NCBI RefSeq assembly: GCF_009834535.1
Contig: NC_045715.1
Span: 18,724,001 to 18,788,000, forward strand
Source: Camelus ferus
Lineage: Eukaryota
Reading direction: 5' to 3'
DNA: 64,000 nt
Part shown: positions 798 through 53,285 of the stretch, one piece after another
Layout: every line of letters begins with the position of its first letter
Numbering within the stretch: position 1 is the first letter of the stretch
Translations under genes and position numbers: made by a program
Notes under the pieces: model-generated
What the model was told of the DNA's origin: nothing
Seen by the model: the letters and a program-made list of their open reading frames with translations, nothing else
Database searches by the model: none

Positions 798-1906
798 TAT
801 TAATACCTCCAGCCAAACTAAGGACTCTGAATAGCCTCTGCTTTAAGCATCTCAGAGTTCTTGCATCACTATGATACTTTCATTCACATTGCTGTGTGGC
901 ACTATGCCAGGCAATTACATTAAAGATCACATTTATAATTTACATCAGGTAGTCACTACTACCTCTATTGTTGAGGTTGGTGGTTTTGGAGTTGTGGTGG
1001 AAATGGGAAGGTAAGTCTTCAACTCAAAGAGCCATTTTCCATTGTTGACCCTAGGACAATTAAGAATTCTAAGAATTATAAGCAATTTTCCTCTCTGAAC
1101 ATCTCAGAGACCTTGGTTCACTATAGTTCCTTTCATTTACATTAATGTCACCACACCAGAAAGGCAATATTATATTCACTTTATAGATGGGGAACCTGGA
1201 GTTCCTAGAATATAAGAAATAGTGCCAGTACTCTTGATTTACATAGTAGAAACTTGAACCCAGGCTTGTCTGGTTCCAAATTCCACGTTATTAGTATCTT
1301 TTTTTCCCCTCAGTGTCAGAATACTTTTTATTCATTTACATGCTCATTTTAAAAATCATTTTTGTTTCATATTAGTATCTTTTTATTTTCATTCTATGAG
1401 GTCCTAAAAGGCAAAAGACATGTTCGTTTGAAATCTGTCTGACAGCTTGCTCGAACCTATCTACAAACATAGTTTTGGGAGTGGTCTAAATACTTTTAAT
1501 TGTTTCAGATGCTAGAGTAATCTCCTTGGCACTGAGGAGAAATTAGAATGAAAAAGTAATGTACCAGGAATTGTAACCAAACTTCCTAATAATAGCTATC
1601 TAGGTGGAAAGTACTGCAAACAAAGATTAGCCAGATGACAAAAGAAAAAAAATCAAAGAACCAATTTTATTAAAGCTGTTTAAACCAGGTATTTATCTTA
1701 AATTTTTGGTTTTCATTTTTGAAGTGCTGATACAGATATAGAAAGACTGAATTTTAGAAATACTTAGATAACTAAGTATTTTTCTTGTTACAACAATATC
1801 AGTTCTGTAAATGTCTTCAAACAGAAAGGAAAGTGATTATAAATAATTGAAATAGTCAATAAATATGTTCATTGACTTCCTGAATTTTTGTTTCAGGAAA
1901 CCAAGA

Positions 1907-2863
1907 ATGGAAACACTGGTCACGAATCACATAAATGACAGTATCCCACTGGAGTTTATCCTCTTAGGCTTCTCAGATCAACCATGGCTGGAGTTTCTAC
2001 TCTTTGTGGTTTTCTTCATTTCTTATATCGTGACTATCTTTGGAAATCTGACCATTATTCTAGTGTCACGCCTGGACTCCAGACTCCATACACCCATGTA
2101 TTTCTTTCTTACCAATCTGTCACTCCTAGATGTTTGCTACACCACAAGCACAGTTCCACAACTGCTGGTGAATTTATACAGCACCAGGAAGGTAATTAGT
2201 TATGCTGGCTGTGTAGCCCAGCTTTTCGTGTTTCTGGCCTTGGGGGCCACTGAATGTGTTCTGCTGGCTGTCATGTCCTTTGATAGGTTTGTAGCTATTT
2301 GCTGGCCTCTCCATTACTCAGTCATCATGCACCAGAGGCTCTGCCTCCAGTTGGCGGCTGCGTCCTGGGTTACTGGTTTCAGCAACTCAGTGTGGTTATC
2401 TGCCCTGACTCTCCAACTGCCACTCTGTGGCCCTTATGTACTAGATCACTTTCTCTGTGAAGTCCCTGCTCTGCTCAAGTTGTCCTGTGTTGACACAACA
2501 GCAAATGAGGCTGAACTATTCCTTGTAAGTGTGTTATTCCATCTGGTACCCTTGACACTTATTCTTATATCGTATGCTTTTATTGCTCAAGCAGTGTTGA
2601 GAATCCAATCTGCTGAAGGTAGACAAAAAGCATTTGGAACATGTGGCTCCCATCTGATTGTGGTGTCCCTTTTTTATGGTACAGCTATCTCCATGTACCT
2701 GCAACCACCTTCAACCAACTCCAAGGACCGGGGAAAGTTGGTTTCCCTCTTCTATGGAATCATCGCACCCATGCTGAACCCCCTGATATATACACTTAGA
2801 AACAAAGAGGTAAAGGAGGCATTTAAAAGGTTAGTTGCAAGAGTTTTCTCAATCAAGAAATAA
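1907..2863 (+). CDS. OR2B6: Olfactory receptor, OR2B6 ortholog (318 aa from ATG 1907)
   Basis: OR motifs [46 protein letters not shown]. Segments [17 protein letters not shown] and C-terminal [11 protein letters not shown] match recalled human OR2B6. Splice acceptor TTTTTGTTTCAG ends at 1896, so the ORF-track ATG at 1865 is intronic. Confidence 0.92.
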
Positions 2864-2864
2864 G

Positions 2865-3257
2865 TGTTACAAAGAAGAAAAACAGGCCCCAAACGGAGTC
2901 ACTTGTACTAAGCCCATGAAACCAAACCAGGACTTGATACCTAATGCAATTGCAGTCTTAACCCTCCAGGAATGTTTGCTTAGACAACCTGGAATTTCCT
3001 GGTCAGCAGTAAGTGAGGTAATCTGCCTAATAGGTCCTTCCCTTCCCCTTGGGAGGGCAATCTTGCCTGAAACAATGCATTTTTTCCTAATAATTTCCCT
3101 TTTTGCCCCACCTTTCTGCCTTTAAAAACCTTTCCTTTCTACAGCTATGCAGAGCTCTTTTTTGTTTGCTAGATGGGATGTTGCTTAATTCATGAATTGT
3201 TCAATAAAGCTAATTAGATGTTTAAAATGTACTCAGTTGAATCTCTGTTATTTAACA
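2865..3257 (+). mobile_element. Solo ERV1-type LTR (MER34-like)
   Basis: TGTT...AACA termini; AGGCCCCAAACGGAGTCACTTG..CTAAGCCC resembles recalled MER34-group LTRs; AATAAA at 3203-3208. OR2B-type 3' flank resumes after 3257. No clear TSD. Confidence 0.65.
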
Positions 3258-4049
3258 CAATGAATATGCAAGTGATAAGCTCTGTAAACGATTAATGTTT
3301 ATGTTGCTTACTAACTTCCAGTTGCCCTATTTTCATCATTCCTACAGAGAACCTTTGTGTTTATCTCCCTCAAATAAAATTTCATTGACAGAAAGCTACA
3401 TTAGTCTTCTTTTGCCTGAACATATTTATTGAACAGATATCCACAACTAGCCTTCCAGTTCACCAGAAACTGTGTAATCTGAACCTCTTCAAACTTTACA
3501 TCAATGTTTGTATAATTTGGTGTAGCTTAGACCCTTCTAAGAATATGGTAAAGGCCAGAAATCATTTCTCTGGTAATATCATACGTACACACGCACTCAG
3601 AAACACACATTTTTTCACACAATTAGAGGAGGTTTACCAAAACCCTAAAAAAATAACAACTTTAAATGAGGTTATCAACTCATGTTTAAAATTTTCAATA
3701 TCACTTCCATGTCAGCATAATAATAAAAACCAGTGATTTTTCTTCTAGATTGTGCTTGGATTTTCCATTCTCTATACTCAGGTTTTCCTCTTCATTGGAA
3801 ACATCCCTTTTTACTTCCTTTATAGATCAAATCCTAGGCATTTATTAGGCCTCACTAATTTTCACTTCCTTGAAATTTTTTTCATAATTCTCCCAATTAT
3901 CAATATTTTCCCTATTTTCTTAACCCCTAAAACACTTACAGCCTAGATTTTAAAATAGCACATCATATAGTGAGTTCCAATGATTTCCTGTTTCATACAC
4001 GTTTCTTGCACAACAATAGTTTCATTACATTTTAATCTCCTTAAGAGAA

Positions 4050-4450
4050 CATAGCAGTGACTTAGTCCTGCCCCAAACCCTCCACTGCAATTATTGTAAA
4101 GTTTAATCTGTTAATATGGCTTATAACTCCTTACATGATCACTCCAACCAATGCAAAACTTTCTTCACTTTCATTTGATGCCATGTGAGATTCATCCATT
4201 TTGATTCATTTTTTATCCTGTGGTATACTCCTTAGTATGAATGGACCACAGTGTATTAAGCAGGTCTCCAAATGATACTCATCTAGGTGATTTCCAATTT
4301 TCTGCTACCACAAATAAAGCTGTTATCAACATTGCTATACCTACCTCTTGGGTATATGAGCTAGAATTTTTCTATAGATGTGGAATTTCTGGGGCATAGT
4401 TATATGTAAATCTTCAAATTTACTATATATTGCCTGTTTCCATTTATTTG
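4050..4450 (-). mobile_element. Old L1M fragment
   Basis: Decayed antisense L1 motifs (GAGATTCATCCATT...TAGGTGATTTCCAATTT...AATAAAGCTGTTAT). Boundaries approximate. Confidence 0.55.
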
Positions 4451-5039
4451 TATTATTTTTATTTATTATGGAACTACATCACATAATTGTCAATAAACTA
4501 AAATATTTATTTATGGTAAATGGAGATGCATGAAGAAGAAATAAGTTATAGTTACCATTTTATATCCTATAGAAAAGTCAATACTGCAAATCATTTGCCC
4601 TTAGAGTACTCCATCAAAAATTTCCTATGCCTTTTATTCAAAATGTTCATTGTAAAAGACAGCAAGTCTTCAACATGATACATTTACTATCTCCTTATAG
4701 ATGAACTGATAAAACTGACAATTATTAATTGAGAAAGAACTATATGTTAACACTTTGCTAGGCACTGGGGATACAGCAGTGAATGCAATGCTTAATGGGA
4801 AGTGAATATATAGTAGAGTGGAAAACTAATGAGCAATTAACAAATACAATAGAATCAAGAACTCAATGTTTATCTTTTTCTCTGTCTTGAATAAGGTGGT
4901 AATTTTTGACACAATCTTGTAAGTTCCTCTTTCTAATCTTCCTTACTTTTCTTATGAAATGCTAAGGACAGATACATAACACTTATTGATGTACCAATTG
5001 TCTTTCACAATGCCTGCAAATATGTTTGATGAATAAAAT

Positions 5040-5680
5040 TTATTGAATTCCCAGAGTAATTGGCATTAGGAGTTTTTTGGAAATTGCTGCTGAAGATTGA
5101 GTAGAGAACAACAAAAAAGTCACTGATAGAGAATAGCTCTCCTAGATACTCCCACTGAATCCCTGCTCAACAAAATGCCGTCCATAAGCGAGGGAATGAT
5201 TATTCTAGTTATGTCAGGAAAGTTGAGATTTGATGGTGCGCATGCCATTAACGCGTAAAGCCTCAGGGCTGCTGAGTAGCTCTCAGAGGCAACTGTAAAG
5301 CAAAGAGAACATAATGACAGGAGCTGAGTCACGCTAGCTCTCCACTGCAATCAGTCCTTTATTGACTGTTTCTCCTCTAAGACAGATAACCCTAGAGATT
5401 GCTCCATTTTGTGAGTTATAATGAAACTGGCTTGAAACTTTTTAATGGCTGCATGCAGCATGGGGAGAACATGTTAATCAGTTCTGCTCTTCCAAGAGCT
5501 GGATCTCTGTGGACACGGAGAAAACAAGATCGTGGTTATCAATAGTTCAACTCTAATAGCCATTATAATGAGATCTCTAGGGTCTTGTTTTTCCTTCCAA
5601 CTTGTATTAAAGAGCAGCAGAAGTTGAAAAATCACTCTTTCTCTTGCTCTAGTTTTAAATGTTACTGATGACCTCATTAT
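5040..5680. promoter_or_regulatory. Candidate OR enhancer or strong promoter (Lhx2 homeodomain + O/E/Ebf motif cluster)
   Basis: TAATGA at 5312, 5419, 5566 and 5674 (reverse); AACTTTTTAATGG at 5436-5448; O/E-like TCTCAGAGG 5281, CCCTAGAGA 5390, TCTCTAGGG 5574; TCCCAGAGTAATTG 5049-5062. Confidence 0.55.
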
Positions 5681-8600
5681 GTTCATATAAACACGAAACA
5701 ATTGCAAAATATTTAAAGGTGGAAACAATGTACTATTACATACAGTCTTCTTCCAAGCTTACTCACACCGTTACTTTGAAAATGGCAAGAAGAAAATCAA
5801 GCTATTTAGTTAAAAAAAAAAACTATTTTCTTATACCCTCAGATTTCAAATATTATGAAACTGAAAATTATTTGCAATACAGTAGGAGAAAAATATCTCA
5901 TTGTTTTGATTTGTATTTATTTAATTACAAGTGAGACTAAAAATTTTTATAAGTTTGGGGACCATCTGTGTTGCTATTTTATTAAATTTTATCTCATTGT
6001 TCTTTGCCCATTTGTATTACCCAGACAAGTGTAATCCTTACTTATTTTTAAAAATTTATTTGTTGGAAAAGGCCCTTTGATTACTAAAAATATTTGCTCT
6101 TTGTTCCATGTATGTGTTGTAAATATTTTTCTCTGTTTTACAAACTATTAGTAGGCTTTTTCTAAGAACTTATTGAACCAGTGCGATTTGTTCATTGGCC
6201 ATAAAACTTGACTCCTATATTGCTTTTTACTTTAGTCTTATTTCTATACCTATAAAATGATACAATTTTAAACCCAGATAACATACAAGTTTTGCTTCTG
6301 AGATGAGTTTTTTAAGGGTCAGTCATTAGTTTCAAATAACATTAGTTTGGGGAAAAATGTAAGCTTTAATGTGTCACATCAGTGAGTACGATTAATGTTT
6401 ATTCTTGTGCCCGTCTTAGAGGAATCTCTCTAGACCTTAATTCACTGGTTGCAGAGATCATGTTATCATTTTGGAGGTTTTTGGGGGGCAAATTTACCTT
6501 CTCCAAAAGGTAATCAGTGTGGTTTCCACTTTTTGTTTGAATATAATTTAAAGACCATGAATGAATCAAATGCAGTCTATTTATTTTATATTTACTATAT
6601 TCCAGTAACCTTACCAATATAAGTGAAAATAAAAGTTACAAATCAGGTGACAAAGAGAAACATAATATACTTTCGCATTATCATTTTGAAAAATTATATT
6701 AAAATAGAAGGAAATTAGACTTTAAGATTCTTCCCTCAGAAGACAGACTAAATCTCATTTCAATTCAAGGATAAAAGGTGTTCAAAAGCTGTTCATATTT
6801 GCACTATGCTGCCAAACTTTGGTGTTGCCCCACCAAACACCAGGAATATTTTCTCATAGAAATAAAAGTTCAGAGTTTTAGGATATGGATAACTGTGGCC
6901 CCAGACAGAAACCAAGAAAAGAGATTTGATTCCCAATCATCTGATGTTATTCCAAGATTTCCCCTAAGAGTATACTCCTCTATTCCCTTCTGCAGCCCAG
7001 CCAATTACCCAAAGGAGTATGCAGTCCCTATGATCTCAACAAGAAAACATGTTATGTCAACTTGGAGGCACCATTTTTGATGCTAAGAAGTTAGTCCTTC
7101 GTTTTTCAGTCCATCTGGGTCTATAAGAGCTTCCTAATCTGCACTGGTTATCTTCTGAGGGCTTTAGCTGAGAGCTCCTGAAGCCTCCTGAAGGCTGGGT
7201 ATTCGGCCAAAATGGCAGGTAGACAGGGGATGAATGCTAATGCTATTTTCTATTTCAATTGCCTCTTTTTTCCATAATTTAACTAACCTATGGCAATTAT
7301 TCCATTTTGTGTTTTCTCTGAGGTAGTGATACACCATTATTCCATCACTCTAGTCAAATTATAAGAAAAAGGGATTCACATGGCATTTACAACTCTTTTA
7401 TCTTCAGGAACAAACAAGACTCTAACACAAGAAAGACGGTTTGGGGCTTGATTGTCATCTCCCTTCTTAACTTAAGATCTCTGTAACCACTTTTATATAG
7501 TACCTGGTGCATTAGACTCATATCATTCTATTGTTACTTTACCTATAGTAACTGCACAATCTTCTGTAAAATCCCAAGTAACAAATGCCAACCAAAGGGA
7601 AAAACATCAGTGTGGGTTCTCCCTATTAATGTTTTCACTTGGGAATGTTGAAACCAGGTAAGCCTAAATGATTTGAGAAAATTAAGAATATTTTCTTTTC
7701 TTTTGGTATACTGTATTTGGCTTTGGAAAATAAATTTAGTATAAGAACTGAGAAGTTGAGACACTTTCACCAAAAAACAAGTTTTTTATTTGAAAATCAA
7801 AATATTTGTGACAATTTATGTCCTACTCTGCCTTTATTTTTTCCCAGCTTACTAATTGAATATATATTATTAATTGAAGCAGTCTTTGATTCTCTAAATC
7901 ACACAGCAGTCTACATATTTTATAAGATCCATTTAATAATTTTAGTCCTTTTATTTATGCTTAAGTTGTCAAAGAATCAACATGACTAAGGGTTTAAGGT
8001 ACATTTCCTTTGCACCTGCTACTCTGCTGTTTTCACGTCTGTCTCCCTTTCACAGAGATGCCCATGTGAAATCCCTCAGAAATCAACTGCCTAAAAAATT
8101 TTAAAAGAATTCAAAATTTTTGTTTTCTTAGGTAAGCATGTGTTTGATGTCACAGAATAATTAAATTCCTCATTTTACCCTTCTCTGCATACAGATTTTA
8201 TAGGAGCTCTTCAGATAGTATTTTTAAAGAATGCTGGCATACTTCCCTAATATAGGGCATAGTTTGCATGGCAATGACCCAAGTTGATGTTATTATAAAT
8301 TATGGTAGAAAAAACTATGGTAGATATAGGTTTTTGTTTTTCAGGTAGCTAATCAATTCTGGAATTTTAGTAACTATTAATTACACAAAATAAAATTATT
8401 TTTCTTCATAATCATAAAGAAGGAAATGCTGGCATTTTTAACAAGAAACCAGAAGAAAAAGGTGACTTTTTATACTCAAAAAGTAAATATAATTTTTACT
8501 TAAATTTTCTTATCAATTATAATTATATTTAATTTCATTATTATCCTACTATTCCTTATTCCAAATATAAGTCTGATTTTATGAACCCAGCTCTTTTTAT

Positions 8601-9576
8601 TCTTTTTAGCCATAGTAGGGTCAATTTTTTAAATTGCTTTATAAAGTTAATCTTTATTTGCTACATTCTCCTTTTTCTCTCCATTCATCCATACTGCCAT
8701 GCACCTCTCCTCTGCAAGCTAATCATGTTGTTTTGATGTTTCTAAAAGGCTACCAAAAACAAATTATATCCAAAGTTGCCATTTTATTACTGAACAGAGT
8801 ATCCTCCCTGACTCTGGCAATCTAGGCTGCAGAATTATTTTTCTTTCAAAGAAATGAATGATAGAGATCTGAGTTGACAGAATTTCATGAGAATAAGACC
8901 TAGGAGTATCTAGTAGATACAATTATAACTTAATTCAAAAAGTGTCATTGACATTATGAAGTAAATGCATACTTAATACCACATTAATAAGATTATAATA
9001 GTCCAGGTCATGGTAGGCAATAGTTTCCCTGAACCTTGTGATTTTCAAATCATATCTTGGATACTGAACTCGGCCCTGGTTGTCAGATTTCCAGAAGGTC
9101 ATTGTCAACATGAGGGTATTTGGAAGACATCTACTAGGGTGATAATATGCCTGATTACCTTGTTATATGAAGAATCATCAAAGAAAATTGAATGTCTTGT
9201 CCTAAAGAAAATTTATTTTAAATGTGGTAGCTGCCTTTAATGGCTGTCATATAAAGAGAGATTAGATATGATGTATATTCAATAAAGTTAAAATATTTTG
9301 TCTTGTGAATAAGGAGAAACACTTCTTCTTTAATAAAAAGATGATGATTATCAGTCAGAATCTTCTAACTCTGAAATAATCTGCCTTACATGTTTGAACA
9401 AATGATGTACAGCTTATATGGCCGGGCAGACGCTATTCCAGTATTGGTTGGGTTGCTAGACTTGATGTCTTATATGTGTCTTTAAAATCCTGATATTCAA
9501 TGGCTTTCAGAAAACATAGATTAAATTTTCTTTATTTTATTCTTACCAGCTGTTCAGATGATGTGAAAGGAAGGCA

Positions 9577-10506
9577 ATGGAAAAATCCAACGACAGCTCA
9601 GAGTATGGTTTTATCTTAGTGGGATTCTCTGATCGTCCCAAACTGGAGATGGTGCTTTTCATAGTAAATTTTACTCTGTATTCAGTGGCTGTGCTGGGAA
9701 ATTCAACCATAATCCTTGTATGTATATTAGACCCTCAATTTCATACCCCAATGTACTTCTTTCTGGCAAATCTTTCCTTTCTAGATCTCTGCTTCAGTAC
9801 TAGTTGTATCCCACAGATGCTGGTTAACCTCTGGGGCCCTGATAAGACTATCAGCTATGCAGGCTGTGTCGTCCAGCTTTTCTCTTTCCTTTCTGTTGGA
9901 GGAATCGAATGCATCCTTCTGGCTGTCATGGCATATGACCGCTACGCTGCAGTCTGCAAGCCCTTGCACTACATGGTCATTATGCATCCCCAGCTGTGTT
10001 TACGACTGGTGGCTGTGGCCTGGGGAAGTGGACTAGTCAATGCCATTGTCATGTCCCCACTAACAATGACTCTCTCCAGATGTGGCCAGCGACGAGTTAA
10101 CCATTTCCTCTGTGAAATGCCAGCACTGATCAAGATGGCTTGTGTGGATGCTCGTGCAGTGGAAATGCTGGCCTTTACCTTTGCCATTCTCATTGTCCTA
10201 CTGCCCCTCACTCTTATTCTTGTCTCCTATGGCTACATCGCAGCAGCAGTGCTGAGGATCAAGTCAGCTGCTGGGAGACGGAAGGCCTTCAATACCTGTA
10301 GCTCCCACCTTACTGTGGTCTCCTTGTTCTATGGGAGCATCATCTATATGTATATGCAGCCAGGAAACAGCTCTTCCCAAGACCAAGGCAAGTTTCTCAC
10401 CCTCTTCTACAACCTGGTAACTCCCATGTTGAATCCACTCATCTATACCTTAAGGAATAAGGAGGTGAAAGGAGCACTGAAGAAGGTTTTGGGGAGGCAA
10501 CAATGA
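9577..10506 (+). CDS. Olfactory receptor, OR2W subfamily (probable ortholog of human OR2W4P by synteny), intact 309 aa
   Basis: N-glycosylation site [71 protein letters not shown]. Acceptor AGs at 9548-9549 and 9556-9557. Confidence 0.92.
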   Translation: MEKSNDSSEYGFILVGFSDRPKLEMVLFIVNFTLYSVAVLGNSTIILVCILDPQFHTPMYFFLANLSFLDLCFSTSCIPQMLVNLWGPDKTISYAGCVVQLFSFLSVGGIECILLAVMAYDRYAAVCKPLHYMVIMHPQLCLRLVAVAWGSGLVNAIVMSPLTMTLSRCGQRRVNHFLCEMPALIKMACVDARAVEMLAFTFAILIVLLPLTLILVSYGYIAAAVLRIKSAAGRRKAFNTCSSHLTVVSLFYGSIIYMYMQPGNSSSQDQGKFLTLFYNLVTPMLNPLIYTLRNKEVKGALKKVLGRQQ

Positions 10507-13500
10507 GCAGCAGAGGTGTGCTAAGTTGTAAAGTCCTAGGCAAAATATTTTTTTCAAACACTACCATTTATTTTGTGCTTATAATAACTTAAGCCAATGT
10601 ATCAGATGCTCTTGGATCTTTTAAGATGTGGATAAATACACTGAAGTGTACCCAGAGTCAAAGTGAATCAGCTATACCTACACATATTGTTGTATCTTTG
10701 CAACATAATACTTAGTGAAAAGAATTAAGTCCCAGAAGAAAGGTGAAATGACTCTCATATAGATATAAAACAAATATGTGTTAAAGATTTTATTCAACAC
10801 AGTTAATGAGGGAACCAGGAAAAGTAATAACCAGTTCAAAAAAAAAAAAAAAAGACTCAAAAAGCAGAGATTTACAAGAAGTGAAGGAATGTTTGAAGTA
10901 AATGTACAAGTGGAGGCAAAAATTGCTTCTTCCACTGTGGGAAAGGTAAGTCAAATAGTTTCTACCTGACAGAACTCAATTTGCATGTCATACACAAGAA
11001 CTATTTTGCTTGGCTATCAGTTATCTATAATTTACAATGTTGTAAAATGCCTGCCACAGAATCAGAATCAGATAACCTGGAGAGGTGTCTAGACTCTAGA
11101 CAATGTATAATTTTCCACTGAAGTATAAATTTGTCCCTTAAAGCTCAACTATATATCTTACTCATGTTATAAAACTGAGTAGTCTCAAGTTTCTTACACA
11201 CTTGTAGGTATTTTCATCCTGATTTTTTAAATAGCGAAACTTTGGTTTATAGATTCTGTGTAAATGAACCTGAGTCACACAGTAGCTAACTGGAATTCAA
11301 AACCGGTGTGTACAAATCTGAGCCTCTGTTGATAGCCACCTTTGTTACAGAGTGTGTAGTGCATGTCAGGTGACCTTGTTTTCTTGTACAATCCTTTAAT
11401 CATGCTGAGTATGCTATAGATCCTATAAAACTCTCACCATTTAGAAGCTCACTAATTTTTCTTTAACTGTTAATACCACATCATCCCTTCCCACATTGTC
11501 CCATGAAAATCCCCTGTCCGAATCTTTCCCATGCTTCAGTGGTCAGCTCTAACACAATACATTTGTAAAATTATCTGGGACTCTGATTTTAAAATGTTCT
11601 GTCACTCCTTTTAAACTATCACATTTTTATACAATGAAATAACAGTTCTTCTAGTTAATATATTATATGTTTTATATATTCTTATTAGACTGTAAATTTC
11701 TTGATGGTAGAACTATTTTTTTTAATCCTTCTTAGCACCATTTCAGGTATTAAGTTGTTGTTAAGATGCCTTATAGACAGTAAGTGATCAATAATAACTC
11801 AAGATGATCATTAATTTTAATTGATTAATTATATCCAGAAATTATTCCTTCATTTTATTTGATGCACTGTCTAAATCTTTGTTCTTCAAGATTATGATTG
11901 AATCTATCACAATATTCTGTTTGAGTTTAAACTGCTATCAGATGTTTCATGCTTTTTTTAAATCAATTAAACATAAACTCCATAAAGAGAGAGAAAAAAA
12001 AGTCATTAAGGAATCTCCATGGGTATGAAAAATCAGCCCCAACTTTTGGGGAACAAACTTTTTTTTCCTAAATATCAATCTTAAACTCAAGGAGAATTGC
12101 TATGAATTCTGCCATGGTCTAGAGGCTGTTTTGACAGTGACAACAAATCAGAATTTTAAACCTCTTCTGTTGACATAAGAAAGGTATTCCTCCCCTCCTC
12201 ATTCAAATTATTTTCTTGGATACAATGCCCTCAGAGTCCCCATTTCATTATTCCTTATTTGTTACCCAATTCTCATTGTTAATCAATCATTAAAACAACT
12301 GAAAATATTTTTTAAAGCCTCTATAAATATGAGTGGAATAATATATGTTTGCAAATCATATAAATGCTGGAAAGTTAGAAAATGGCCTTTGTGGAAGGCA
12401 GTGGGAATGATTATGTAATACTGAATTTTACACTGAAAATGGAAATTACTCTTAATGAGTATATGGATGTTTAAGTAGAAAAAATGCTTTAAATGAACAT
12501 TACTGTTGTCTCTGGTACAGTTGCATGTACTTTCTCAAGGCACTGAGATTTCAGTTAGGTAACACCTAGAATTCTACTCTTGGGATTACATAGCCCCCCA
12601 TATCATGTGTTATATAGATCTGATGATTTCCAAAATAGCCTTTACTTCTATGCTTCTTTTTCTTTTGTATTTGTTTAAGAAAATGTCAATAGTAACTTAA
12701 TACCTTAGAAAGGCACATTTATTTTGCATATTCTGTATTTTACAGAATATTTGTCTTGAAATAATTTATTGGGTGTATTCTTATGACAGAATCAAAAAAA
12801 TGTTTATTTCAGTGTGAGAGGACTAACATCCAGTTAAAATAATTTAGAAAGGTATAACAGAACAAATTTAAACATAGAATGACTATCATACATCTATTGT
12901 AAAATAAGTTACATGGATTGTTGATCTTATATGATCTCCCTTTTACTCCTGGTGTACTCCCTATAGACATGTTCAGGATTTTTCACAGCAATTTATCTAC
13001 CCTGTCTCTACTGTGACAGAAAGAAATTCTCTTGGACATTAGAAGTTTTTACTACCTTTAGACGTGCTAAAAAAAAAATGATACACAAATTCAAACTTGT
13101 TTCCTCTGAAGTACTTTGTTGTATTAGGGGATCACTTTTTAAATGATCACTCAAAGGAATGAATCCATAATATGAAAATACCAGTCATCATTGAGGCTTA
13201 TTAAAAATAATATTTATCAATTTGAGGAGGGCTCACAAAACTCCACAAAGACATAGCTATTCACATCCATTCTATGTGAAATTAAATTAAATATCACAAT
13301 TATAATTGATAAGAAAATTTAAATTAAAAGTATATGTACTTCTTAAATATAAAAAGTAACTTCTTTCTTCTGGTTTCTTGTTTGAAACACCAACATTTCC
13401 TTCCTTATGATTATGAAGAAAAGTCAAAAAAATTTTTTTGTTTTGTGTAACTAACAGTTTCTAAAATTCCAGAATTGACTGGCTAAATGAAACACAAAAA

Positions 13501-17587: not shown

Positions 17588-18552
17588 CAATGGTGAAAAG
17601 TTGAAAGCCTTCCCACTAAAATCTGGAACAAGACAAAGATGCCTACTCTTACCACTTCTGTTCAACATATTATTGAAAGTCCCAGCCATAGCAATCAGAC
17701 AAGAAGAAAAATAAAAATAAAAGTGATCCAAATTGGAAGGGAAGAGGTAAAATTGTCACTATATGCGGATGACATGATACTATATATGGAAAACCCTAAA
17801 GATGCCACACAAACACTAGTAGAGCTGATAAACAAGTCAACAAAGTAGCTGGTTACAAGATTAACATACAGAAATCTATTGTATTTCTTCATACTAACAA
17901 TGAAATAACAGAAAAGGAAAGTAAAAAACAATCCCTTTTAAAATTGCTTCAAAAAAATACTTACGAATAAAGTTGACCAATGAAGGGAAAGACNNNNNNN
18001 NNNNNNNNNNNNNNNNNNNNNNNNNNNNNNNNNNNNNNNNNNNNNNNNNNNNNNNNNNNNNNNNNNNNNNNNNNNNNNNNNNNNNNNNNNNNNNNNNNNN
18101 NNNNNNNNNNNNNNNNNNNNNNNNNNNNNNNNNNNNNNNNNNNNNNNNNNNNNNNNNNNNNNNNNNNNNNNNNNNNNNNNNNNNNNNNNNNNNNNNNNNN
18201 NNNNNNNNNNNNNNNNNNNNNNNNNNNNNNNNNNNNNNNNNNNNNNAGAACAAAGCTGAAGGAATAACCCTCCCAGACTTCAGACAATACTACAAAGCTA
18301 CTGTAAGCAAAACAGCGTGGTACTGGCACAAAAACAGACATATGGATGAATGGAACAGAATAGAGAGCCCAGAAATAAACCCACACACTTACGGTCAATT
18401 AATCTTCAATAAAGGAGGCAAGAATGTGCAATGGAGAAAAGACAGTCTCTTTAACAAGTAGTGTTGGGAAAGCTGGACAGCCACATGTAAATCAATGAAG
18501 TTAGAACACTCCCTCACACCATGCACAAAAATAAACTCAAAATGGCTTAAAG
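17588..18552 (+). mobile_element. Younger L1 ORF2 (RT and downstream) fragment with a 253-N gap, 3'-truncated
   Basis: Translates to EEVKLSLYADDMILYMENPKD (RT YADD motif) and [46 protein letters not shown]. Confidence 0.92.
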
Positions 18553-52340: not shown

Positions 52341-53285
52341 ATGGAAAGAGCTAATGACAGCACCTTCTCTGGATTCATTCTCCTGGGCTTCTCCAACCAG
52401 CCTCACCTGGAAACGGCTCTCTTTGTGATCATCCTGATTATCTACTGTTTGAGCTTTGTAGGCAATGGCACCATTATACTTTTGTCAATTGTGGATGCTC
52501 ACCTCCATACCCCTATGTATTTCTTCCTCTCCAACCTCTCTTTTATGGATCTTTGTTTGACTACTTGCACTGTCCCTCAGACACTGGCCAACTTTAAGGG
52601 GAAGGACAAGACCATCACCTATGGTGGTTGTGTGACCCAGCTCTTCATTGCCTTGGGACTTGGGGGAGTCGAGTGTGTCCTCCTGTCTGTCATGGCCTAT
52701 GACCGCTATGCAGCTGTGTGCCGCCCGCTCCACTACATGGTGAACATGCACCCTCAGCTTTGCTTGCAGCTGGTTGTAACCGCTTGGCTCCCAGGCTTTG
52801 GCAATTCTATAGTACAGACAGCATTGACCATGACTCTTCCCTTCTGNNNNNNNNNNNNNNNNNNNNNNNNNNNNNNNNNNNNNNNNNNNNNNNNNNNNNN
52901 NNNNNNNNNNNNNNNNNNNNNNNNNNNNNNNNNNNNNNNNNNNNNNNNNNNNNNNNNNNNNNNNNNNNNNNNNNNNNNNATCTTAGTATCCTACGGTCAC
53001 ATTACCCGTGCAGTCCTGAAAATAAAGTCCGCCCAGGGGAGGTGGAAGGCTTTTGGAACCTGTGGTTCTCACCTAATGGTAGTGATTATTTTCTTTGGGA
53101 CACTCATCTCCATGTACCTCCAGCCTCCCTCCAGTTATTCCCAGGATGTGAACAAAAGCATTGCACTGTTCTATACTCTGGTGACTCCCCTGCTGAATCC
53201 CCTGATTTACACTTTGAGGAACAAGGAAGTCAAAGGGGCACTAAGGAGACTAGTGAGAAGAAACAGAGACTTGAGACAGAGCTAA
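52341..53285 (+). CDS. Family 2 olfactory receptor (probable OR2B7P ortholog by position), 314 codons including a 133-N gap; intactness not provable
   Basis: [68 protein letters not shown] run 52847-52979 covers ECL2-TM5. Acceptor TTTCAACAG ends at 52330. Confidence 0.85.

Follow-up and report, generated by a model that had tools for sequence, protein, structure and literature searches.

Positions 5040-5680 of the camel window (the whole 64-kb stretch of DNA that was analysed) are read here, with a probability of about 0.7, as a Greek-island-type cis-regulatory module that combines Lhx2-type homeodomain (HD) sites with weak Ebf-type O/E sites, and as the ortholog of the mouse element Iraklia, i.e. 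as a candidate enhancer of odorant receptor (OR) genes. Judged from the sequence, the segment appears to have the make-up of a Greek-island-type enhancer; the matching chromatin and binding evidence comes from the mouse ortholog only, and there depends on the broader criteria that Wu et al. applied. We infer binding of Lhx2 and Ebf in camel, enhancer activity and the mapping of the mouse coordinates onto the window.

The OR2B6-OR2W6 interval

The window is AT-rich (33-40% GC) and carries five intact OR open reading frames with Pfam 7tm_4 matches. The candidate is intergenic and lies inside this OR gene cluster, between the stop codon of an OR2B6-like gene (2863) and the ATG of OR2W6 (9577):

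1865-2863, plus strand: OR2B6-like coding exon, 96% identical to the alpaca protein, with a conserved 3' UTR to about 4050
5040-5680, unstranded: conserved module of HD and O/E sites, candidate enhancer and ortholog of mouse Iraklia (mapped via an inferred offset), from the six-species alignment and the mouse Lhx2 and ATAC peaks
9577-10506, plus strand: coding exon (309 aa) of the OR2W6/Olfr1362 (MOR256-8) ortholog, Pfam 7tm_4 E = 5.7e-50

The gene at 9577-10506 carries the name OR2W6 in the annotation of other mammals, MOR256-8 being an alias of mouse Olfr1362. Protein comparison agreed with the flanking gene names given in a preliminary description of this DNA, namely OR2B6 for the frame at 1865-2863 and OR2W for that at 9577-10506. 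The OR2W6 protein is 92% identical to mouse Olfr1362, 95% to the peccary protein and 92% to the koala protein, which is unusual conservation for an odorant receptor.

Three other identities were tried for the candidate and rejected. It is not part of the OR2B6 3' UTR, as conservation of this UTR stops near 4050 and the candidate lies anywhere from 2 to 25 kb away from OR2B6, depending on the species. A young repeat was dismissed after no second copy of 5040-5680 was found within the 64-kb window, and a known non-coding RNA after the segment gave no match in Rfam.

Some further features of the locus were recorded. The 3' flank of OR2B6 (2863-4053) is conserved out to elephant and armadillo over 3262-4053, while the roughly 400 bp right after the stop (2863-3262) have no counterpart in these two species, suggesting an insertion in the camel lineage. 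One of the five OR frames (52341-53285) contains a run of N at 52847-52979, so that its 314-aa "ORF" reads through masked bases, and its Pfam match is split in two pieces; a second N run lies at 17994-18246. In searches of public runs, several RNA-seq runs labeled "reproductive system metagenome" carried 57-100% of the intergenic and OR DNA at 5000-10600; most of the runs found were of this kind or unlabeled, with 83-100% of the locus. This looks like host genomic DNA carried over into low-biomass metatranscriptomes rather than expression.

Candidate binding sites in 5040-5680

A motif scan found all the motifs that the preliminary description had listed. TAATGA occurs at 5312, 5419 and 5566 on the plus strand and at 5674 on the minus strand, TAATGG at 5443 (plus) and at 5245 and 5560 (both minus), and TAATTG at 5057. 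The 13-mer AACTTTTTAATGG occupies 5436-5448. The inverted pair of O/E-like 9-mers was recovered as CCCTAGAGA at 5390 with its reverse complement at 5574, as was the HD-O/E juxtaposition in which TCCCAGAG at 5049 immediately precedes TAATTG. Altogether the segment holds 8 TAAT[TG][AG] cores and 5 O/E-like 10-mers, the latter counted at a threshold of at least 6/8 to TCCCNNGGGA. The camel O/E sites are all weak, none of them reaching 7/8. The individual sites, together with their state in other mammals, are the following:

5047-5062, plus strand: O/E-like half site adjoining an HD core, TTCCCAGAGTAATTG; kept in 6 of 7 species, degraded in mouse
5158-5170, plus strand: conserved block AATCCCTGCTCAA with no factor assigned; conservation 5.05/6
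5260-5275, plus strand: O/E site weakened in camel, GCCTCAGGGC; TCCCCAGGGC or TCTCCAGGGC elsewhere in the alignment
5355-5368, plus strand: ancestral TAATTG HD site, lost in camel (TTTATTG); TTAATTG in bear, rabbit and guinea pig, TAATTG in mouse
5387-5400, plus strand: O/E-like site AACCCTAGAGATT; CCCTRGAGA invariant in 7 of 7 species
5415-5427, plus strand: HD site TATAATGAAAC; TAATGA retained in carnivores and rabbit, absent from the three rodents
5433-5458, plus strand: extended HD site, 12/13 to the H/P/P3 13-mer AACTTTTTAATGA; top conserved non-coding 20-mer
5500-5515, plus strand: O/E-like site that the preliminary description did not list, TCTCTGTGGA in camel and TCCCTGTGGA (7/8) in mouse; from alignment and scan
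5564-5583, plus strand: composite-like Lhx2+Ebf site TAATGAGATCTCTAGGGT; predicted binding, from register and conservation
5646-5668, plus strand: TTTTAAAT block at the right edge, conserved in 5 of 7 species; might serve an alternative start as a TATA-like element

In addition, a 13-nt direct repeat (TATAATGAAACTG / TATTATGAAACTG) has copies 434 bp apart at 5417-5429 and 5851-5863. The copy at 5851-5863 carries the ATTATGA variant, as mouse does at the first site; this may be chance.

Two of the earlier arguments from motif counts were only partly upheld. Four TAATGA sites are indeed present, but the statistic attached to them was too generous: with 62 occurrences in 64 kb (0.36 expected per 370 bp), the probability that some 370-bp window of the 64 kb contains at least four is 0.25, which is not significant alone. 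Likewise, the 13-mer described as near-perfect matches AACTTTTTAATGA at 12 of 13 positions, but is not significant by count, since 0.75 matches with at most one mismatch are expected per 64 kb and at least one was found in 58 of 100 shuffles. Support for this site comes from its conservation.

It is the combined density of HD and O/E sites, rather than any single motif, that exceeds chance. A 640-bp window holds on average 2.2 cores and 1.7 O/E-like 10-mers, as against 8 and 5 here, and the fraction of windows with both at least 8 cores and at least 5 O/E-like sites is 0.0003, 5040-5680 being unique in the 64 kb. In GC-matched windows of the same cluster (n=370) the mean was 1.5 cores and the maximum 6, and none of 500 dinucleotide shuffles reached 8 cores.

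The arrangement of the sites can also be compared with that of known OR enhancers. [quoted passage not shown] Like P, the camel element lies a few kb upstream of the gene that it most likely serves. H and P have undergone deletion and transgene tests, whereas the camel element is known from its sequence and from mouse peaks; P itself is unbound in the data of Monahan et al. (2017, PMC5608512). With the Greek Islands of that study (e.g. Sfaktiria and Lipsi, or Halki and Tils, which belong to the same cluster in mouse) the candidate shares an intergenic position in an OR cluster and multiple HD and O/E sites.

At 5566 the Ebf-like 10-mer occupies positions 9-18, counting from the T of TAAT. The Sfaktiria and Lipsi composites have this register too, and the camel site is the only in-register pair of an HD core and an Ebf-like 10-mer (at least 6/8) in the 64 kb. 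Compared with the Sfaktiria composite used in gel-shift assays (TAATTGATCTCCAAGGAA), the Ebf half of TAATGAGATCTCTAGGGT is in the same register, while the HD half is TAATGA and not TAATTR. A published degenerate composite pattern (PMC11643329) proved non-discriminating in such AT-rich DNA, with 312 matches per 64 kb; the region has five, as many as 24.5% of windows have. Although 5566-5583 fits 16 of 17 positions of this pattern in the composite register, the pattern is too permissive for the fit to be informative.

Conservation among mammals and the mouse ortholog

OR2W6 orthologs with 10 kb of flank were compared from mouse, polar bear, rabbit, guinea pig, hyena and marmot. Synteny is kept, and 5040-5680 could be aligned in all six of these placental mammals with a mean column identity of 71%, every pairwise alignment breaking at 5676-5680. 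Projected on the camel window, the candidate averages 4.19 of 6 identical species per base, with 22% of its columns invariant, compared with 3.32/6 and 1.7% in the left flank and 4.97/6 and 60% in the coding exon. When non-coding 20-mers over 4000-9560 were ranked, the H/P-like site came first (GAAACTTTTTAATGGCTGCA, 5.45/6), the O/E+HD block at 5041-5060 third and the block of CCCTAGAGA (CCCTRGAGA) eighth. The motifs are thus found in the orthologous DNA as well, and motif-level conservation extends across Boreoeutheria, a new point relative to the published mouse candidate. The elephant and armadillo loci, which were anchored on OR2B6, cover only the ortholog of its 3' UTR, the armadillo sequence stopping about 400 bp before the element.

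Not every site is old. Among the TAATGA sites, two of the four (5419 and 5566) are conserved, those at 5312 and 5674 being lineage-specific. Changes of camel's own are the TAATGA gained at 5312, the TAATTG lost at 5359 and the weakened O/E site at 5263. The extended HD site ends in TAATGG in camel and TAATAG in the six other species, four of which match the 13-mer at 11/13, polar bear and guinea pig having one further change each. In camel, hyena, rabbit and guinea pig the composite-like site has both halves in register. Both are also present in polar bear, where the alignment shows one extra spacer base, and the TAAT core is lost in marmot (TGAT) and mouse (TAAC). Slow evolution is a feature of the whole 5.5 kb upstream of OR2W6, and 6000-7900 is nearly as conserved as the candidate (4.13/6), so that conservation alone is not specific to 5040-5680.

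In mouse, the element has most likely been recorded in two published datasets. Monahan et al. (PMC5608512) reported 63 Greek Islands, the nearest of which to Olfr1362 is Halki at 267,036 bp, and consequently there is no Greek Island between Olfr1362 and Olfr11. The Figure 1 source data of that paper list chr13:21618522-21618988 as "Lhx2_only_OR". The OR clusters, 36 Mb in total, have only 51 peaks of this class, and by its signal (5.98) this one ranks about tenth; no Ebf peak was reported there, and single-factor peaks were described as barely above threshold. The missing Ebf call and the weak Lhx2 signal account for the absence of the element from the original 63. Wu et al. (2024, Nat Methods, PMC11166570) later added 27 candidate OR enhancers, defined as ATAC peaks of mature olfactory neurons (mOSN) within OR clusters that overlap Lhx2 and Ebf peaks. 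Among these is Iraklia, at chr13:21618597-21619098 in mm10 (ATAC Peak-214572; Supplementary Table 3). The Ebf status of the mouse element hence differs between the studies, being negative in Monahan et al. and co-bound in the more permissive reanalysis of Wu et al.

The published peaks are given in mm10, our mouse locus in GRCm39, where the ortholog of 5040-5680 is chr13:21,802,665-21,803,250; the shift between the two assemblies was deduced rather than measured. The distance to Halki puts the lower boundary of the Olfr1362 gene model at 21,610,980 in mm10, and for Olfr11 this reasoning recovers the model start that Wu et al. report. The offset then amounts to 184,231 minus U, with U standing for the 3' UTR length that the Olfr1362 model includes. 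Offsets from 184,231 to 183,976 place the Lhx2 peak and Iraklia at 4943-5680 of the window. With U = 0 Iraklia falls at 4943-5504. With U = 90 (the first AATAAA past the stop) it falls at 5051-5608 and the Lhx2 peak is centered at 5435, on the 13-mer, and with U = 255 (a model ending at the SINE/(TA)n block; offset 183,976) at 5229-5680, with the ATAC summit at about 5508 on the conserved O/E site. A U of 582-800 would move the mouse peaks to 5600-5830, abutting the candidate just 3'. The Iraklia interval would then contain no O/E-like site instead of 4-5, which is hard to square with the Ebf requirement of Wu et al. Very probably, then, the mouse peaks truly overlap the ortholog of 5040-5680 and do not simply adjoin it. 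Taken together, the peaks occupy about 0.13% of OR-cluster DNA, so that an overlap by chance would have a probability of about 0.003. The Lhx2 ChIP-seq peak from mature olfactory neurons and Iraklia, the latter called on ATAC data from such neurons, are taken as one and the same element and coincide with the mouse ortholog, given the inferred offset. Logan and JGI contigs with Olfr1362 turned out to be collinear genomic DNA, not cDNA. A SINE-like element, a (TA)n run and a B1 element break up the mouse 3' flank of the gene (L001:11035-11410), and all short-read contigs with the gene stop there.

Iraklia occupies the same position as the camel element, upstream of Olfr1362/OR2W6 and downstream of Olfr11/OR2B6, and the two share the extended HD site, the CCCTRGAGA site and the O/E site of TCCCTGTGGA type. 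They differ in that mouse has lost the TAAT core at both HD-O/E juxtapositions (CAAT at the 5057 site and TAAC at the 5566 site), a new point that fits the weak mouse signal, while mouse keeps the TAATTG whose camel counterpart at 5359 is gone. The distance to the ATG is 6.5-7.1 kb in mouse and 3.9-4.5 kb in camel, the greater mouse distance being due to insertions. The element is known as a kind, and as a locus its mouse ortholog has most likely been published already as a candidate.

Downstream of the candidate, OR2W6 probably has a separate proximal promoter near 7000-7150. In the part of the OR promoter list of Monahan et al. (PMC5608512) that was covered, the one Olfr1362 interval is chr13:21614022-21614322, which, depending on the offset, maps to 6710-7004 up to 6962-7240 of the window. 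The features of this region are:

6710-7240, plus strand: probable OR2W6 proximal promoter, with the conserved TATA box TATAAGAG at 7121-7128 and CAATTA and O/E-like blocks at 6927-7016
7649-7668, plus strand: conserved splice-donor-like CAG|GTAAGC at 7657/7658; conservation 5.2/6, presumed donor use
9527-9550, plus strand: polypyrimidine tract and AG, a putative acceptor by its sequence, 27 nt before the OR2W6 ATG

The promoter-like block as a whole spans 6900-7668, with O/E-like sites at 6927-6968, CAATTA at 7002, TATAAGAG at 7121 and the donor-like site at 7657, whose GT is lost in mouse (L001 about 8535). Further on, about 490 bp of the presumed intron (8047-8538) are not collinear among species. 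In polar bear, hyena and marmot their match is on the opposite strand, 3-6 kb 3' of the OR2W6 exon, and an old dispersed repeat or an inverted transposition may be the cause.

Going upstream from the OR2W6 ATG, the candidate is reached after 3.9-4.5 kb, about 1.5-2 kb beyond the likely proximal promoter, and with promoter-like features at 6710-7240 and 7657 it is best read as a separate upstream module. Canonical OR proximal promoters contain the same two motif classes as the candidate. They are, however, depleted of juxtaposed sites and closed in bulk neurons, and here a separate TATA-bearing block exists at about 6900-7150.

Competing explanations and regulatory role

The preliminary description had proposed either the cluster enhancer or an unusually strong promoter of the OR2W gene. 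A candidate enhancer is supported, but not "the" cluster enhancer, since stronger islands, Tils and Halki, are found in mouse at a distance of 267 kb and the site of Monahan et al. is Lhx2-only and weak. That description had also named three findings that would speak against its proposal, namely a lack of motif conservation in orthologous DNA, a mouse ortholog neither bound by Lhx2/Ebf nor accessible, and a motif density no higher than in GC-matched windows of the cluster. All three were checked, the second by way of the inferred offset, and none went against the proposal. A strong promoter is less likely, as the mouse-annotated Olfr1362 promoter maps to about 6710-7240, with the conserved TATA box at 7121. 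A particular form of the promoter proposal is an alternative distal OR2W6 promoter, in which the TTTTAAAT block would set a start at about 5690 and splicing would join a first exon without coding sequence to the acceptor at 9550. The conserved TATA-like block at 5646-5668 does sit at the 3' edge of the module, conservation falls at 5680, Lhx2 and Ebf sites are enriched in OR promoters, the P3 promoter contains the same 13-mer, and a second Olfr1362 start may figure in the remainder of the Monahan et al. promoter list. Nevertheless, we consider a distal promoter improbable. The one Olfr1362 promoter in the covered part of that list maps 1.3-2.2 kb downstream, where a true TATA box is conserved. 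In bulk mature neurons, OR promoters as a rule are neither open nor bound, and yet this site gives a ChIP and an ATAC peak in mouse, and no conserved splice donor was found right after 5680. Nor would such a promoter fully exclude an enhancer, because OR promoters have HD and O/E sites as well, and for 10 of the 63 Greek Islands an OR start is found within 500 bp.

Somewhat less probable still is a conserved non-coding element with another role, be it regulation outside olfactory neurons or simply a slowly evolving block around a conserved OR gene. The whole of 4000-9560 is conserved (65% alignable to mouse at 73% identity) and the O/E-like sites are weak (6/8), both of which would suit this explanation, but the conservation peaks coincide with the HD and O/E words themselves and the mouse Lhx2 and ATAC signals originate from olfactory neurons. 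A functionless cluster of AT-rich motifs could account for the single-motif counts (P = 0.25 for four TAATGA per 370 bp; 0.75 near-13-mers expected), but the joint enrichment is absent from all shuffles and GC-matched windows, the motifs are conserved across Boreoeutheria and the mouse ortholog is bound, given the inferred offset. Chance is accordingly a very improbable explanation, which the conservation and the mouse data come near to refuting.

For the preferred reading, a Greek-island-type enhancer, the mouse literature suggests how the element might work. In olfactory sensory neurons, Lhx2 would bind the extended HD site at 5436-5448 and other TAAT cores, and Ebf the O/E-like sites next to them, among these the in-register composite at 5566-5583. 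Thus occupied, the element would stay open within OR heterochromatin and, with Ldb1, would raise the choice probability of nearby ORs, OR2W6 first and possibly OR2B6. The element may also join the inter-chromosomal enhancer hub.

The analysis indicates that a Greek-island-type OR enhancer may be recognisable from the raw sequence of a non-model mammal. For one of the 27 added mouse candidates, conservation of single motifs across Boreoeutheria also gives independent support for its being functional. Mouse, without the HD half of the composite, shows weak Lhx2 signal, in contrast to camel, hyena, rabbit and guinea pig, where both halves stand in register. On a tentative and rather doubtful reading, most placental mammals would keep the intact spaced composite at 5566-5583 and the second juxtaposition at 5047-5062, mouse having lost both TAAT cores. 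The weak "Lhx2-only" state in mouse would then be derived and degraded, the element being elsewhere a full-strength Greek Island dedicated to the conserved OR2W6. If this is true, the locus would be a natural experiment on the contribution of the composite motif to enhancer strength.
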